Sequence record: NC_034623.1
Length of the DNA stretch: 36,493 bases
Strand: one strand, 5' to 3'
Below, piece after piece: positions 3,982-32,157 of this stretch. The notes below the pieces were generated by a model. That model did not search any database. It was given only the letters and a program-made list of their open reading frames with translations, and was not told the origin of the DNA. Made by a program: the position numbers and the translations under genes. Every line of letters starts with the position of its first letter. The stretch's first letter is position 1.

Positions 3982-4149
3982 ATGAAAGTCGTACAAGTTC
4001 AAAACACAAGATATTTCATTCAAGACAAAGATGATTTAATAAGCGTAACTCATGAGTTGGCAAGGCAAGGCTATAGTATAAGTCAAATAGCTCAAGTGTT
4101 AGGAATAAGTGAACGACAAGTAAGAAAGTATTTGGAAGATTGTTGGTAA
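3982..4149 (+). CDS. 55-aa HTH protein, homolog of SIRV1 ORF56a / SIRV2 gp1
   Basis: Translated by hand: MKVVQVQNTRYFIQDKDDLISVTHELARQGYSISQIAQVLGISERQVRKYLEDCW. It has a classic HTH (SQIAQVLGISERQVRKYL) and closely matches my recollection of SIRV ORF56a. Confidence 0.88.
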   Translation: MKVVQVQNTRYFIQDKDDLISVTHELARQGYSISQIAQVLGISERQVRKYLEDCW

Positions 4150-6490: not shown

Positions 6491-7798
6491 TTAACCACCT
6501 AAATTACTAAATCTCATTAAGTTTATTATTCTATTACAAATTTCTTCATTTTGTACTTTTCCAATTTGTAGATCTATGTCTAATGCCTGTAATAGAATTT
6601 GAATATCGATACTTTGCTCTTGTCTTCTAGATTCTAAATTATTGCAATTTACATAGTTATTAATACTATTTATTTTCTGTTGAATTAATTCAATTAAAGC
6701 TTTCAAAATTGATGGATAGAGAACTCTTGCATTTATAATTTTATCATAAGTTTTTTTAATTGCTAATTGAATAATATGAATTCTATCTAATATTGCAGAT
6801 GTAAATATTTGATAATTTTGTAAATAATCTTCTATATCTGGATTTACTAATTTATTAATTGTATAAGAATATGGATTTCCAGCGTAAATAATTGGAATAC
6901 ATTTTTGAATAGTAGCAGATTTTGACTCTGTTCCAGCACCTCTTGTCCAAATACAATTTTCAATTCCAGTTGATAGAGTTGAATTTATAGTATTTAATTC
7001 TTTTGTTGAAAAACCATCTTTCCAATTTTGAATTTCATCAAATATCAATCCATTTGATAAAAATACAGCTCCATACATATTATTTCGGGCATCATAAACT
7101 AGATTTGCATAAGTTGGAGCTTCTGTATAATATCTAAAATTGAAAACTTCTTGTAAAATCATAAAAGTTGTAGTTTTTCCAGTTCCTCTGTTAGAAATTT
7201 CAATATAATTAATTTGTCTTTTTGTAATTGGAGATTTGAATAATGGAAATAATCTAGGGAGAAAGAGAAATATATCATTTATTTCCATTTTTGATGGATC
7301 ATATCCAAAACTTTGCAATAAAAGTGCATAAGTTGAATATTCTGAATTTGCTAATTCAAATAATTCTTTTGCAATTTCATAATTGTTGGGTGGCTCAATT
7401 GAATAAATATCATAAATACGCCAACCTTCTATACCTTTTCTAATTTTGACAAACATGTAACTTGTAATTAAATTATAGAAATCTTCAGGATTATCAGCTA
7501 TAAAATGTGGATCGAAATTTGCAGTAAAACCATTTTGAAATTTTGCTATTATTTCATCATCTTTAACTTTAAAATTAACAATTTTCGAAATAAACTTAAC
7601 TTCATCATTATATAATAAATAAGACTGAAAATATTGTTGATCAATTCCGCGTTTGTAAGCTTTAAGAATTTCAACTTTTTTTGAGTCTTCAATTTGTTTT
7701 CCAGATAAAATTATATTTAAAACTCTTTCTGTATCTCTTGGATTATAAAAAAAAGAATGAGATTTTATTTTTTCAAGAAGTTGAGTTGAACTACTCAT
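6491..7798 (-). CDS. AAA+/P-loop ATPase, putative helicase (SIRV2 gp18-like)
   Basis: Walker [10 protein letters not shown], Walker B LIFDEIQ, sensor AGNP and arginine finger AILDR; located between the SSB and the nuclease. Confidence 0.92.
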
Positions 7799-22032: not shown

Positions 22033-22848
22033 ATGAGCGTTAATTTATGTCATTATGAGGCGGAAAATATAAGTTATAAAGATTTAGAAAATCTTCAAGG
22101 TATGATATATTATGAGATAAAATATGATGGAACACATATTTGTTTAAAGTATGAAAATGAACTAAAAATTAATACTAGAAAAGATATACCTCATGATAAA
22201 ACATTTCAGAATTTGTTTTATCAAGTTCCAAATATTGATGAAATTATAAAATATATAAAAGAACATAACAATTATATAATACATGGGGAACTTATACATA
22301 AAAAGACATCAGCATTACAGATTCACAAAAATGAAACTCCGGAATTTATCATATATGATGTCTTTGACAAAGAAAATAATAGATATTTAAATCCATTTGA
22401 AGTTGATAGTGAAATTTACGAATGGTATCCAGAAATTTGTTTAGATTTAGATGATTTACTTGATATTATAACTAAAGAAAAACTTGAGGGCTTAGTAGCT
22501 AAAATCTATAATCCGAAATTTGCAAATTGTGAAGAAGGCAGAAATTTTAACATGTGTCTTTTCAAATACAAACCATATTTTTCAACTTTAGGAGTAATAT
22601 TTAAACCAATTAGGAGAGAAATTGATGTTAGACAATTAGCGTTTCTTCTCGGCGAAATAGATAATGATTTAAAGAATAATAAAGATGAATGGTATAGAAA
22701 TCATCCAGAACTTTACAAGTTCTTTATCGAAAATAAAGATAAAATAATACAGATACTACAAAACGAAAACTTCATATTACAAATTGAAGAAAATACACAT
22801 TTAGACATTAAGAAAATTAAAGAATATATTACAAATTTCAAAAGATAA
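22033..22848 (+). CDS. ATP-dependent polynucleotide ligase (nucleotidyltransferase domain, RNA-ligase-like)
   Basis: Motif I EIKYDGTH, Ia TRK, III IHGEL, IIIa FIIYDVFD, IV EGLVAK, V FKYKP, in the correct order; no obvious OB domain. Confidence 0.88.
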   Translation: MSVNLCHYEAENISYKDLENLQGMIYYEIKYDGTHICLKYENELKINTRKDIPHDKTFQNLFYQVPNIDEIIKYIKEHNNYIIHGELIHKKTSALQIHKNETPEFIIYDVFDKENNRYLNPFEVDSEIYEWYPEICLDLDDLLDIITKEKLEGLVAKIYNPKFANCEEGRNFNMCLFKYKPYFSTLGVIFKPIRREIDVRQLAFLLGEIDNDLKNNKDEWYRNHPELYKFFIENKDKIIQILQNENFILQIEENTHLDIKKIKEYITNFKR

Positions 22849-29850: not shown

Positions 29851-29930
29851 TATAATATATATTTTATGACATATTTATTTCTTTAAATTTCGAGTAAATC
29901 TTAAATTGGTCATAATGTAGGAGCTATGAT

Positions 29931-31121
29931 ATGGAATTTAAAAGAGAAAGTTCCGGAATAATAAAAAGCTTTAATTCTCTAGACATTTTTTCTATAAATT
30001 TACTTTACATGGGAATTTTAAGCGGTATAAGTTATCCAATTTTTGTCTCAAGTCTTCTAAAATCTGTAAATTTACTATTTGCAATTTTAATAGGTGCAAT
30101 TTTTGGAATTCCGTTACTTGTAATGTATTATTTACTGACTAAAAAAATTCCGTTAAACGGGGGCGATTACGCTTATATTCGTTCTTCATTTTCTCCAAAG
30201 TTTTACACAATTTTCGGAATTTCACTATGGCTAATTTACGTATTTTCAGCTCCAGTATTATCTGACTTAGTACTTCTAAATTTCAATATTCCAGTAATTG
30301 AGAAATTCTTTATTTCAGAATTATTATTTGCTATCGCTTTACTTAGCATAGTTAAAAAGTCAATTTATGCATATATTGTAGACGGAATTGCAATTTTACA
30401 AATAATTGTTTCTTTAATTCTGCCAATTTCAAGTTTCCATTTTCAAGCCCCAAATTTCATATTATCAAACACTTTACTTTCAGCTTTACTATTTGATTTG
30501 TCTATGTTTCTCTTCATAAATGCGATTAGTTATATAGCTGGCGAAACAAAAAATGTAGACAAATCCATGAAAATTGGATATTTCTTAAGTTACTTTGTAG
30601 TTACAATATTAGCGTTATTAGACAGTTATTCAAATTTAAATATCTTATTTCTATTAATGCCAATATGGTTTATGAGTTATATTTTTGTAACTTCCATGAT
30701 TCAAAGTAGATTAATTCAAAATTTAGCATTTGATAAAATCTTACCTGAAAAATTTGCAAAAATAACGCCTAATGCTTTACTGTTAATCTTTATCGCTGAT
30801 ACAATTGCAAACGTTTTAGAAAATCTATTTAATTTCTCAATTTCATTTGGATTTGATGGATTATTATTCATTTTCTGGAACTTTATAATTGTTAGTTTTG
30901 CATTTCTAAAGCTAACAAACAAAAAACTATTATTTTCAATAGTAATGATTAGCCTAATTTTACAGATCTTCTTATTCTTTTATCTAGGCATATCAAATTC
31001 AATATTCTATAATTTTGTAATTCAAGGAAATGTTCTATTTGCAATATTAAGAATATTGCTAATGCCAATTTTAGGAGGAATTATTTACTTATTGAGGAGA
31101 AAAGTGATAAATGTTGAATAA
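29931..31121 (+). CDS. APC-superfamily amino-acid/solute transporter (SIRV ORF399-like)
   Basis: Roughly 11-12 hydrophobic segments; IPLNGGDYAYI and YIAGETKN APC signatures. Confidence 0.88.
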   Translation: MEFKRESSGIIKSFNSLDIFSINLLYMGILSGISYPIFVSSLLKSVNLLFAILIGAIFGIPLLVMYYLLTKKIPLNGGDYAYIRSSFSPKFYTIFGISLWLIYVFSAPVLSDLVLLNFNIPVIEKFFISELLFAIALLSIVKKSIYAYIVDGIAILQIIVSLILPISSFHFQAPNFILSNTLLSALLFDLSMFLFINAISYIAGETKNVDKSMKIGYFLSYFVVTILALLDSYSNLNILFLLMPIWFMSYIFVTSMIQSRLIQNLAFDKILPEKFAKITPNALLLIFIADTIANVLENLFNFSISFGFDGLLFIFWNFIIVSFAFLKLTNKKLLFSIVMISLILQIFLFFYLGISNSIFYNFVIQGNVLFAILRILLMPILGGIIYLLRRKVINVE

Positions 31122-31123
31122 AG

Positions 31124-32071
31124 ATGAAATTGATTTTTGGATTAAGTTCAACATTATCATATATCTTAAAAACTAATTTTCCAATTTTAGTTAATCAACT
31201 AAGATTTAAAAGAAAAACATGGAGAAATGAAACTTGGATAGATAGCGGTGGCTATCAAATTTCATTATATAGTCTAGAAATCTCTGTTGAAGATATTTTG
31301 CAAAAATATAAAAGTGTTAATGCTTACGCATTTTTTTCGCTTGATATTCCTAGTCTATTTGCACCAATAGATAAAAGAAATTTTCAATACTTTGAATACC
31401 TTTATACAAAAATTGAATGGATAGAAAAAATTATACCGGTTTTACATATTTATCCAATTCAAGATATAGATGAAGCTATCGATTTTTATAAACAATATAC
31501 TTATTATTTCGCAATTGGTGGAATTGTAGCTTCTAGTAAAATGAAAGTTCTGATTTATACTTTTCCGTGGGTATATTATGTAAGGCGAAAAATTCCTTAT
31601 CTTCATGTTTTAGGAATGTCGGCTCCATATTTTTTACAAATTTTTAATTTTGCTAATAGCATAGATACTGCAACTTATACAAAAATATCAGGATTTAGAG
31701 AAATATTGTGGTTTGATGGCTCTAGGAGATATATTGGAAATATGAAAACAAAAAGGGAAAGATATAAAATTACAAAAGAAGAAAAAGAACAATTGTTTGA
31801 ATTTTTAGATAAATATAACTTTCCATTTGAATATAACCTAAATAACAGAAAAATTTTAGAAATGATAAACGCTTATATTCTATTATATAACAATTGGAGA
31901 ATTAAGAATAAGTATACTGAATACGCTAATAAATTAAGAAAAATGGGACTAGATAGTTTGACAAGTGAGTTAATTAGAAATTATAAAATTGCAAATGAAA
32001 TATTGAAAGAGAAAAAGAATAAAAAGAAAAAAGAAAACAAATTAAAAGATGAATTAGAAATAGAGATATAA
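31124..32071 (+). CDS. TGT-fold transglycosylase (tRNA-guanine transglycosylase/DpdA-like; SIRV ORF310-like)
   Basis: WIDSGGYQ, SLDIP, IPVLH, AIGG, HVLGM, SIDT; no CxCxxC zinc motif seen. Confidence 0.85.
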   Translation: MKLIFGLSSTLSYILKTNFPILVNQLRFKRKTWRNETWIDSGGYQISLYSLEISVEDILQKYKSVNAYAFFSLDIPSLFAPIDKRNFQYFEYLYTKIEWIEKIIPVLHIYPIQDIDEAIDFYKQYTYYFAIGGIVASSKMKVLIYTFPWVYYVRRKIPYLHVLGMSAPYFLQIFNFANSIDTATYTKISGFREILWFDGSRRYIGNMKTKRERYKITKEEKEQLFEFLDKYNFPFEYNLNNRKILEMINAYILLYNNWRIKNKYTEYANKLRKMGLDSLTSELIRNYKIANEILKEKKNKKKKENKLKDELEIEI

Positions 32072-32157
32072 AAAAGAATTAAATCTTTACATTTTTAGAT
32101 TTATTTTATAACATCCTAATTTTTTAATGTCATACTACAAACCTTATTTGATCTAGA

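Follow-up and report, generated by a model that had tools for sequence, protein, structure and literature searches.

What might a small archaeal virus gain from a membrane transporter encoded directly beside an enzyme of the TGT fold? This question is raised by the genes gp51 and gp52 of the archaeal rudivirus SIRV8, whose sequence (NC_034623.1) we analyzed as one window of 36,493 nt to which positions refer unless another locus is named. RefSeq lists their products as 'aminoacid permease' (gp51) and 'queuine tRNA-ribosyltransferase' (gp52, YP_009362725). The original prediction, made from the DNA alone, stated that the transporter stop and the enzyme start are 2 bp apart. This holds: the gp51 frame closes with TAA at 31119-31121, and gp52 opens with an ATG at 31124. 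It further proposed that the virus imports or scavenges a 7-deazaguanine and that both genes form one coupled module for base exchange. Based on its sequence and predicted structure, gp52 is a minimal, zinc-less member of the TGT superfamily which looks catalytically intact, and the pair is best explained as an operon of two accessory genes, conserved among SIRV-type rudiviruses but dispensable under laboratory conditions.

The catalytic equipment of TGT enzymes can be located in gp52 as D40-S41-G42-G43, L73-D74-I-P, H.LG (residues 161-164) and S179-I180-D181. In an alignment of 20 homologs the DSGG.Q motif with D40 as well as D74, H.LG and D181 were invariant, and in a profile alignment D40, D74 and D181 fell opposite D95, D130 and the nucleophile D249 of ArcTGT with H-x-L-G facing the GAGHP loop. 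The nucleophile, the acid/base residue of the DSGG(F/Y)Q motif and the base-binding Asp are all present. The CxCxxC zinc site is absent, since gp52 does not contain a single cysteine, and the structural zinc site of the superfamily (CxCxxC...H) is missing with it. This is a property of the whole family including the enzyme of the virus STSV2, because none of the 24 members examined has more than three cysteines (0-3 Cys per protein). The architecture is limited to the catalytic barrel and C-terminal helices, and a PUA domain was not found. On all of these points the original prediction was accurate: it had listed both catalytic Asp contexts (DSGG and SID, here residues 40-43 and 179-181) as kept and the CxCxxC and PUA modules as missing.

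An AlphaFold2 (AF2) model of gp52, computed from the 20-member family alignment, reached a predicted local distance difference test score (pLDDT) of 91.8 and shows a TGT-type (beta/alpha)8 barrel. Foldseek assigned the TGT fold to this model with a probability of 1.0. Compared with one representative per PDB cluster, the model was most similar to ArcTGT (1iq8; VIA-align Z 21.2, 263 residues aligned), followed by bacterial TGT (3unt; Z 18.0), the DNA preQ0 insertase DpdA (7ui4; Z 17.6, 254 residues), QTRT2 (Z 16.9) and Cap10 of CBASS (Z 16.1, 236 residues), while unrelated TIM barrels did not exceed Z 13.2. The TGT fold of gp52 is thus well above chance similarity. The family profile likewise ranked ArcTGT 1iq8 (E 5e-5, every motif aligned in register) above DpdA 7ui4, to which the similarity was only marginal at E 1. 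Profiles and structure were needed for this assignment: searches with the single gp52 sequence (Pfam at E 0.1, NCBIfam and phmmer against PDB) did not recover TGT, and neither the TGT model PF01702 nor PF20314 (DpdA4, DUF6610, the archaeal halovirus type) matched gp52 at E 0.1. In cellular genomes PF01702 likewise matched canonical ArcTGT only and missed the gp52 homolog.

Its closest solved relative, ArcTGT of P. horikoshii (PDB 1iq8/1j2b), shares the DSG, LDIP, GxGxP and D(S/T)A motifs in register but has in addition a zinc-binding cluster of Cys and His residues and, for holding tRNA, the domains C1, C2 and PUA. All of these are absent from gp52, and the structural alignment covers only residues 34-358 of ArcTGT. 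Bacterial DpdA of the Dpd system (7ui4) has the fold in common with gp52 and catalyzes the type of reaction proposed for it; however, bacterial DpdA proteins have 413-436 residues and act with a DpdB partner, whereas gp52 has 315 residues and DpdB is not in the virus.

Reading gp52 as a TGT/DpdA-like base-exchange enzyme, as the original prediction did, was right, but the core of that interpretation has already been published: the gene pair is annotated, and the enzyme stands in a published list of candidate DpdA proteins. Hutinet et al. 2019 (PMC6884629) include YP_009362725 / NC_034623 in their Supplementary Data table of DpdA homologs as the protein of a 'DpdA-only' virus, and gp52 is thus catalogued as a DpdA homolog by the authors of the family themselves. 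The same table contains proteins of SIRV1-11, SIRV3 and SRV, described as '12 members of the Ligamenvirales' (PMC6884629). Such singleton DpdA viruses, SIRV8 among them, combine the TGT fold and the catalytic Asp with a lack of viral preQ0 synthesis genes and would rely on a precursor made by the host (PMC6884629). The original prediction had also noted the missing queC/D/E and folE genes, and we obtained no Pfam match to QueC, QueD, QueE, FolE or DUF5591 (the ArcS core) in the 31 SIRV8 open reading frames (ORFs) scanned. The 31 comprise every ORF of at least 100 residues except one of 104, one of 119 and one of 1058 residues, the last of which was compared with PHROGs alone. In S. islandicus, FolE, QueD, QueE, Gat-QueC and ArcTGT are tabulated, and this host makes preQ0 and G+ itself (PMC6884629). 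Added here are the pattern of ArcS-core partners, the permease-only hoswirudiviruses ARV2 and SSRV1, a third gene arrangement, a phylogenetic tree, the placement of the enzyme clade with the DpdA of the dCDG-bearing virus STSV2, and the assignment of the permease to the amino-acid-type APC members.

The proteins of STSV1, STSV2 and STSV4 belong to the gp52 family at 37% identity. In the virion DNA of STSV2, dCDG accounts for 149 per million nucleotides, or 0.04% of G, and the virus encodes only DpdA and an ArcS core domain, 'ArcS2' (PMC10516641). We also found the family in chromosomes and metagenome-assembled genomes (MAGs) of Sulfolobales, including Acidianus, Sulfurisphaera, Stygiolobus and Ca. 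Aramenus. Eleven cellular loci have enough flanking sequence, and at ten of them a DUF5591 (ArcS-core) gene of about 180 residues adjoins the enzyme, like in STSV1/2. Each of five checked cellular genomes has one DUF5591 gene and a QueC domain within an open frame of 466-501 residues, which we took as Gat-QueC, and four of the five encode a canonical ArcTGT of about 505 residues. Because the QueC gene (5/5) and the canonical ArcTGT (4/5) are present in addition, the cellular enzyme/DUF5591 pair likely represents an extra system and not the tRNA archaeosine pathway; for the same reason we consider a 'split ArcS for tRNA' unlikely. A maximum-likelihood tree separated a rudiviral clade from a cellular and STSV clade with 100/100 support, with SRV and SBRV1 on long branches. 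In the rudiviral clade an APC gene is always found in the genome, whereas the cellular and STSV clade has an ArcS-core partner instead. The rudiviral enzymes thus differ from the STSV2 system both in lacking ArcS2 and in forming a separate clade.

Several observations were made alongside this comparison. The STSV2-type 'DpdA + ArcS2' pair is widespread in Sulfolobales chromosomes (our loci L003, L007-L017, L057 and L058). In at least five of the Sulfolobales loci (L007, L008, L010, L012 and L057; partly also L015) the enzyme/DUF5591 pair is followed by four co-directional genes encoding a HerA-like DUF87 ATPase (ca. 539 residues; PADLOC HerA E 4e-29), an unannotatable protein of ca. 1015 residues, a protein of ca. 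223 residues and a NurA-domain nuclease. This could be a Dpd-like modification-restriction locus. Alternatively, the HerA/NurA array might simply reflect conserved gene order, since conservation extends to the genes upstream of the pair and the array is lacking at L003, L013 and L017. L015, which carries archaeal enzyme, DUF5591 and HerA-like genes, lies on a contig that was assigned to a Thermogutta (Planctomycetota) MAG but is probably a mis-binned piece of a Sulfolobales genome. Further, SIRV8-like contigs with permease and enzyme (68-71% protein identity) occur in four bacterial-labelled assemblies (L004, L005, L006 and L009), namely Streptomyces gamaensis, Planomonospora alba JCM 9373, Paenochrobactrum glaciei JCM 15115 and Nocardioides koreensis JCM 16022, and one protein cluster of such contigs is titled 'MULTISPECIES ... 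[Bacteria]'. These assemblies are almost certainly contaminated with rudivirus DNA.

In case of gp51, family membership had to be established via relatives. The protein matched PHROG 8289 at E 5e-198, and its sole Pfam match, AA_permease_2, scored 21.9 bits and thus below the cut-off of 27. A profile of ten family sequences retrieved from PDB xCT (5e-13) and GkApcT (1e-12), then LAT2, y+LAT, Asc-1, CAT1 and AdiC. The GkApcT alignment spans positions 19-410 of 459, so nearly the full length, and the G-E-x-K-N signature after TM6 aligns between the gp51 family and APC carriers. By this profile gp51 shows full-length homology to the APC family (TC 2.A.3). A word-based homolog search with gp51 found SIRV-type proteins only; with an exhaustive profile search the number of relatives came to just 58, the nearest being the permeases of SBRV1, SSRV1/ARV2 and SRV. 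Beyond these rudiviral permeases come cellular APC proteins of about 480-550 residues that pass the Pfam cut-offs; six distant homologs lie above the Pfam cut-off (P0182, P0187, P0188, P0190, P0192 and P0193). Unlike APC amino-acid transporters in general, gp51 has its close relatives confined to rudiviruses, and with 396 residues and very short loops it is smaller than the solved transporters (GkApcT 5oqt/6f34, xCT, LAT, CAT and AdiC; 440-550 residues). An AF2 model of gp51 from a 12-sequence alignment reached a pLDDT of only 36.7 and is unusable for pocket or fold work.

The profile matches indicate that gp51 is a member of the amino-acid/polyamine APC family proper and not a nucleobase carrier; its default substrate class would be an amino acid or organocation. 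The original prediction had pointed out that the APC superfamily includes nucleobase carriers; the best solved relatives of gp51, however, are xCT, GkApcT, LAT, CAT and AdiC. Neither the Pfam scan nor the PDB profile search matched gp51 to YhhQ/QPTR (PF02592), QueT (PF12822) or nucleobase carriers. The known movers of preQ0 and preQ1 comprise YhhQ/QPTR, QueT/QrtT and a single representative each of MFS, HlyIII and the ureide permeases, and the APC family is absent among them (PMC11130926). These 7-deazaguanine transporters were found by their clustering with a TGT-family gene, just as gp51 clusters with gp52, although gp51 belongs to a different family.

Across SIRV-type genomes the association of the two genes is tight. 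Both are intact in all 17 genomes with a gap of -4 to +8 bp between them, the pair is present at every SIRV-type locus with enough upstream sequence, and the median ratio of non-synonymous to synonymous substitution rates (dN/dS) is 0.13 for the permease and 0.14 for the enzyme, that is, both genes are under purifying selection. In SRV the two genes are adjacent, convergent and overlapping, and in the uncultured rudivirus-like contigs L053 and L054 they occur in reversed order, enzyme then permease, with an overlap of 1 nt and in the context of dUTPase, 117-like and PHA01746 genes. We consider this adjacency through three arrangements a real signal of linkage, although the cases are not independent because they come from related small genomes. 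Other genomes speak against an obligatory link: in SBRV1 permease and enzyme are ca. 4.6 kb apart, the complete genomes of ARV2 and SSRV1 encode the permease and, in an unfiltered profile search of all frames, no TGT-like gene, and STSV1/2 and the cellular Sulfolobales loci have the enzyme without the permease. Permease and enzyme are separable, and therefore neither gene needs the other.

In SSRV1 (L050, 20000-20623, minus strand) and ARV2 (L051, 21879-22502, minus strand) a conserved 207-residue ORF follows the permease on the same strand. It sits where SIRVs carry the enzyme, has no Pfam match and a TFB-like gene upstream; we considered it as a diverged TGT or DUF5591 protein, and it is neither. 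According to Mayo-Munoz et al. 2018 (PMC6315595), gp13-gp14, the SIRV2 counterparts of our pair, are absent from ARV and SRV. Contrary to this, both genes are present in SRV in diverged form (38% and 29% identity), and the permease occurs in ARV2.

The dispensability of the pair is documented for SIRV2. In a lineage passaged in CRISPR-null hosts gp10-gp14 were lost spontaneously, and this mutant as well as all later deletion mutants save the last propagated as efficiently as the wild type (PMC6315595). Such a loss without growth cost in a CRISPR-null host is expected of an accessory or anti-defence module. PADLOC models matched neither gp51 nor gp52.

By analogy with characterized relatives we tentatively favour, at not quite an even chance, a role of gp52 in TGT-type base exchange on viral DNA at low stoichiometry, using a 7-deazaguanine made by the host. 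The enzyme would derive from the catalytic domain of ArcTGT by loss of the zinc subdomain and every tRNA-binding domain, while the base-exchange chemistry would be kept, with D181 serving as the nucleophile, D40 in acid/base catalysis and D74 in binding of the base. Like the singleton DpdA of phages, gp52 may act after replication on a small fraction of the guanines in viral DNA and insert a base (preQ0, CDG or G+ type) that the archaeosine pathway of the host supplies. DNA modified in this way could be marked or shielded against nuclease-type host defence, and an anti-restriction role seems plausible by the same analogy. In this scheme gp51 would be translated from the transcript of gp52 and would not be the source of the base. 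The TGT fold and invariant catalytic motifs of a catalytic-domain-only protein, the 37%-identical STSV DpdA from a virus with dCDG, the published DpdA listing, the precursor genes of the host, purifying selection and the cost-free loss in a CRISPR-null host all support DNA modification with host-made precursor. The amino-acid type of the permease and its occurrence without the enzyme in ARV2 and SSRV1 are in agreement with it as well. Several points weigh against it. In sequence (E 5e-5 vs. 1) as well as fold (Z 21.2 vs. 17.6), the tRNA enzyme ArcTGT resembles gp52 more than the solved bacterial DpdA does, our literature search found no nucleoside analysis of rudivirus DNA and no paper on SIRV2 and deazaguanine, and no restriction system for the modification to evade was identified in the SIRV8 host. 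The level of modification in STSV2 is very low and its source was left unexplained by the authors (PMC10516641). Finally, the lasting adjacency in three arrangements speaks against the permease being just a bystander.

This last point leads to the import idea of the original prediction, taken here to mean that gp51 imports a free or conjugated 7-deazaguanine which gp52 then inserts into viral DNA, both acting as one coupled module. The spacing of 2 bp in SIRV8 and the narrow range of gaps in 17/17 SIRV-type genomes speak for it, as does adjacency in three arrangements across lineages that are only 29-40% identical; the split of the tree into APC-partnered and ArcS-core-partnered clades (100/100) looks as if these were alternative ways to supply or tailor the base. 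There is also precedent, since MFS, HlyIII and ureide permease proteins have evolved preQ0/preQ1 transport and were found via TGT clustering (PMC11130926), and the preQ0 transporter YhhQ is carried by some phages. However, the solved relatives of the permease are all amino-acid or polyamine carriers, neither YhhQ/QPTR and QueT nor nucleobase carriers are among its matches, and scavenging a precursor is not needed because S. islandicus encodes the enzymes listed above and makes preQ0 and G+ itself. Permeases without enzyme in the whole-genome profile searches of ARV2 and SSRV1, the 4.6 kb between the genes of SBRV1 and the non-independence of the adjacent cases further reduce the weight of the linkage. 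The idea of a permease feeding the enzyme is suggestive, and we regard import coupled to insertion as unlikely. Import of the precursor, as originally predicted, found no direct support; of the single module, the adjacency stood, while the separability in ARV2, SSRV1, STSV1/2 and the cellular loci spoke against it.

The nucleic acid itself could be a different one. Working as a free-standing ArcTGT catalytic domain, gp52 might modify host or other tRNA (e.g. at G15) and leave viral DNA unmodified, in line with ArcTGT being its closest solved relative in sequence and structure and with the RefSeq label. ArcTGT catalysis does not strictly need the PUA domain, which also counts for an RNA substrate. 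Yet the host already has a full ArcTGT, cellular genomes with a gp52 homolog have a QueC gene taken as Gat-QueC and, in four of the five checked, the canonical ArcTGT of ca. 505 residues besides an enzyme clade that forms an extra system, gp52 lacks the zinc subdomain and every C-terminal domain for binding tRNA, and the virus carrying the related STSV2 enzyme has modified DNA, so we judge action on RNA to be rather improbable. We consider it very unlikely that gp52 is no nucleic-acid enzyme at all and instead a Cap10-like transferase placing a 7-deazaguanine onto protein, or an inert scaffold. Cap10 is an enzyme of the TGT family from type IV CBASS, where it handles a conjugate of deazaguanine and protein (bioRxiv 10.1101/2025.04.06.647259). 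The structural match to it is clear (Z 16.1 over 236 residues) but weaker than those to ArcTGT, TGT or DpdA; the QueC-like Cap9 partner was not found among the 31 scanned ORFs of SIRV8, and the invariant nucleophile and acid/base Asp suit ribosyl transfer. The most far-reaching scheme would combine virus and host: the short rudiviral APC protein as a new family of importers of 7-deazaguanine or its conjugate feeding a zinc-less DpdA that marks rudivirus DNA, and the Sulfolobales enzyme/ArcS-core/HerA/1015-residue/223-residue/NurA locus of several genomes as the modification arm of an undescribed archaeal Dpd-like restriction-modification system whose mark is mimicked by the viral copies. The chances of this combination being correct are decidedly small in our estimate.

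Returning to DNA modification with a host-made base, which we prefer, its confirmation would have consequences beyond SIRV8. Should rudivirus DNA carry a 7-deazaguanine, anti-restriction chemistry would reach those model viruses of hyperthermophilic archaea that have been studied best, and the zinc subdomain would prove dispensable for the activity of a TGT enzyme. If the permease were to supply the base after all, the transporters for precursors of queuosine and archaeosine would gain a new family, and a virus-encoded APC carrier its first function. Because the pair was already annotated, the enzyme catalogued and both genes known to be dispensable in culture, the value of our analysis lies in a sharpened, testable hypothesis and not in a discovery.

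The features of the locus are collected in Table 1. The A/T boxes 5' of gp51 together with the T-tracts 3' of gp52 appear compatible with a bicistronic unit. A search of sequencing runs for the locus returned hot-spring DNA metagenomes alone, with small shares, and no RNA run.

Table 1. Features of the gp51-gp52 locus of SIRV8, in positions of the whole window
Feature	Position	Strand	Remarks
Putative promoter-like A/T-rich stretch	29882..29907	+	Upstream of gp51; read from the sequence, function suggested by the usual Sulfolobus TATA-box spacing
TTTAAATT and TTAAAT, within the A/T-rich stretch	29882-29889 and 29901-29906	+	TTAAAT ~27 nt 5' of the gp51 ATG
gp51, 396 aa, ~11-12 helices, APC-family permease	29931..31121	+	SIRV2 ORF399/gp14 orthologue; from ORF, PHROG and family profile
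Intergenic gap, 2 bp	31122..31123	+	Between gp51 and gp52
gp52, 315 aa, zinc-less catalytic-domain-only TGT-fold enzyme	31124..32071	+	SIRV2 ORF310/gp13 orthologue; 'singleton DpdA'
T-tracts 32092-32096, 32100-32108 and 32120-32125	32092..32125	+	After gp52; archaeal-terminator-like, putative function suggested by the sequence

Three further SIRV8 ORFs deserve mention. On the plus strand at 22033-22848, between the 1058-residue ORF and one of 578 residues, a 271-residue ORF matched Pfam RNA_ligase (E 6e-11) and a DNA-ligase adenylation domain. Two RefSeq names look doubtful: 'terminase small subunit' for a 55-residue ORF (3982-4149, plus strand) in a rudivirus, and 'protease' for a 435-residue ORF (6491-7798, minus strand) whose sole match was a BrxL-like Lon ATPase domain.

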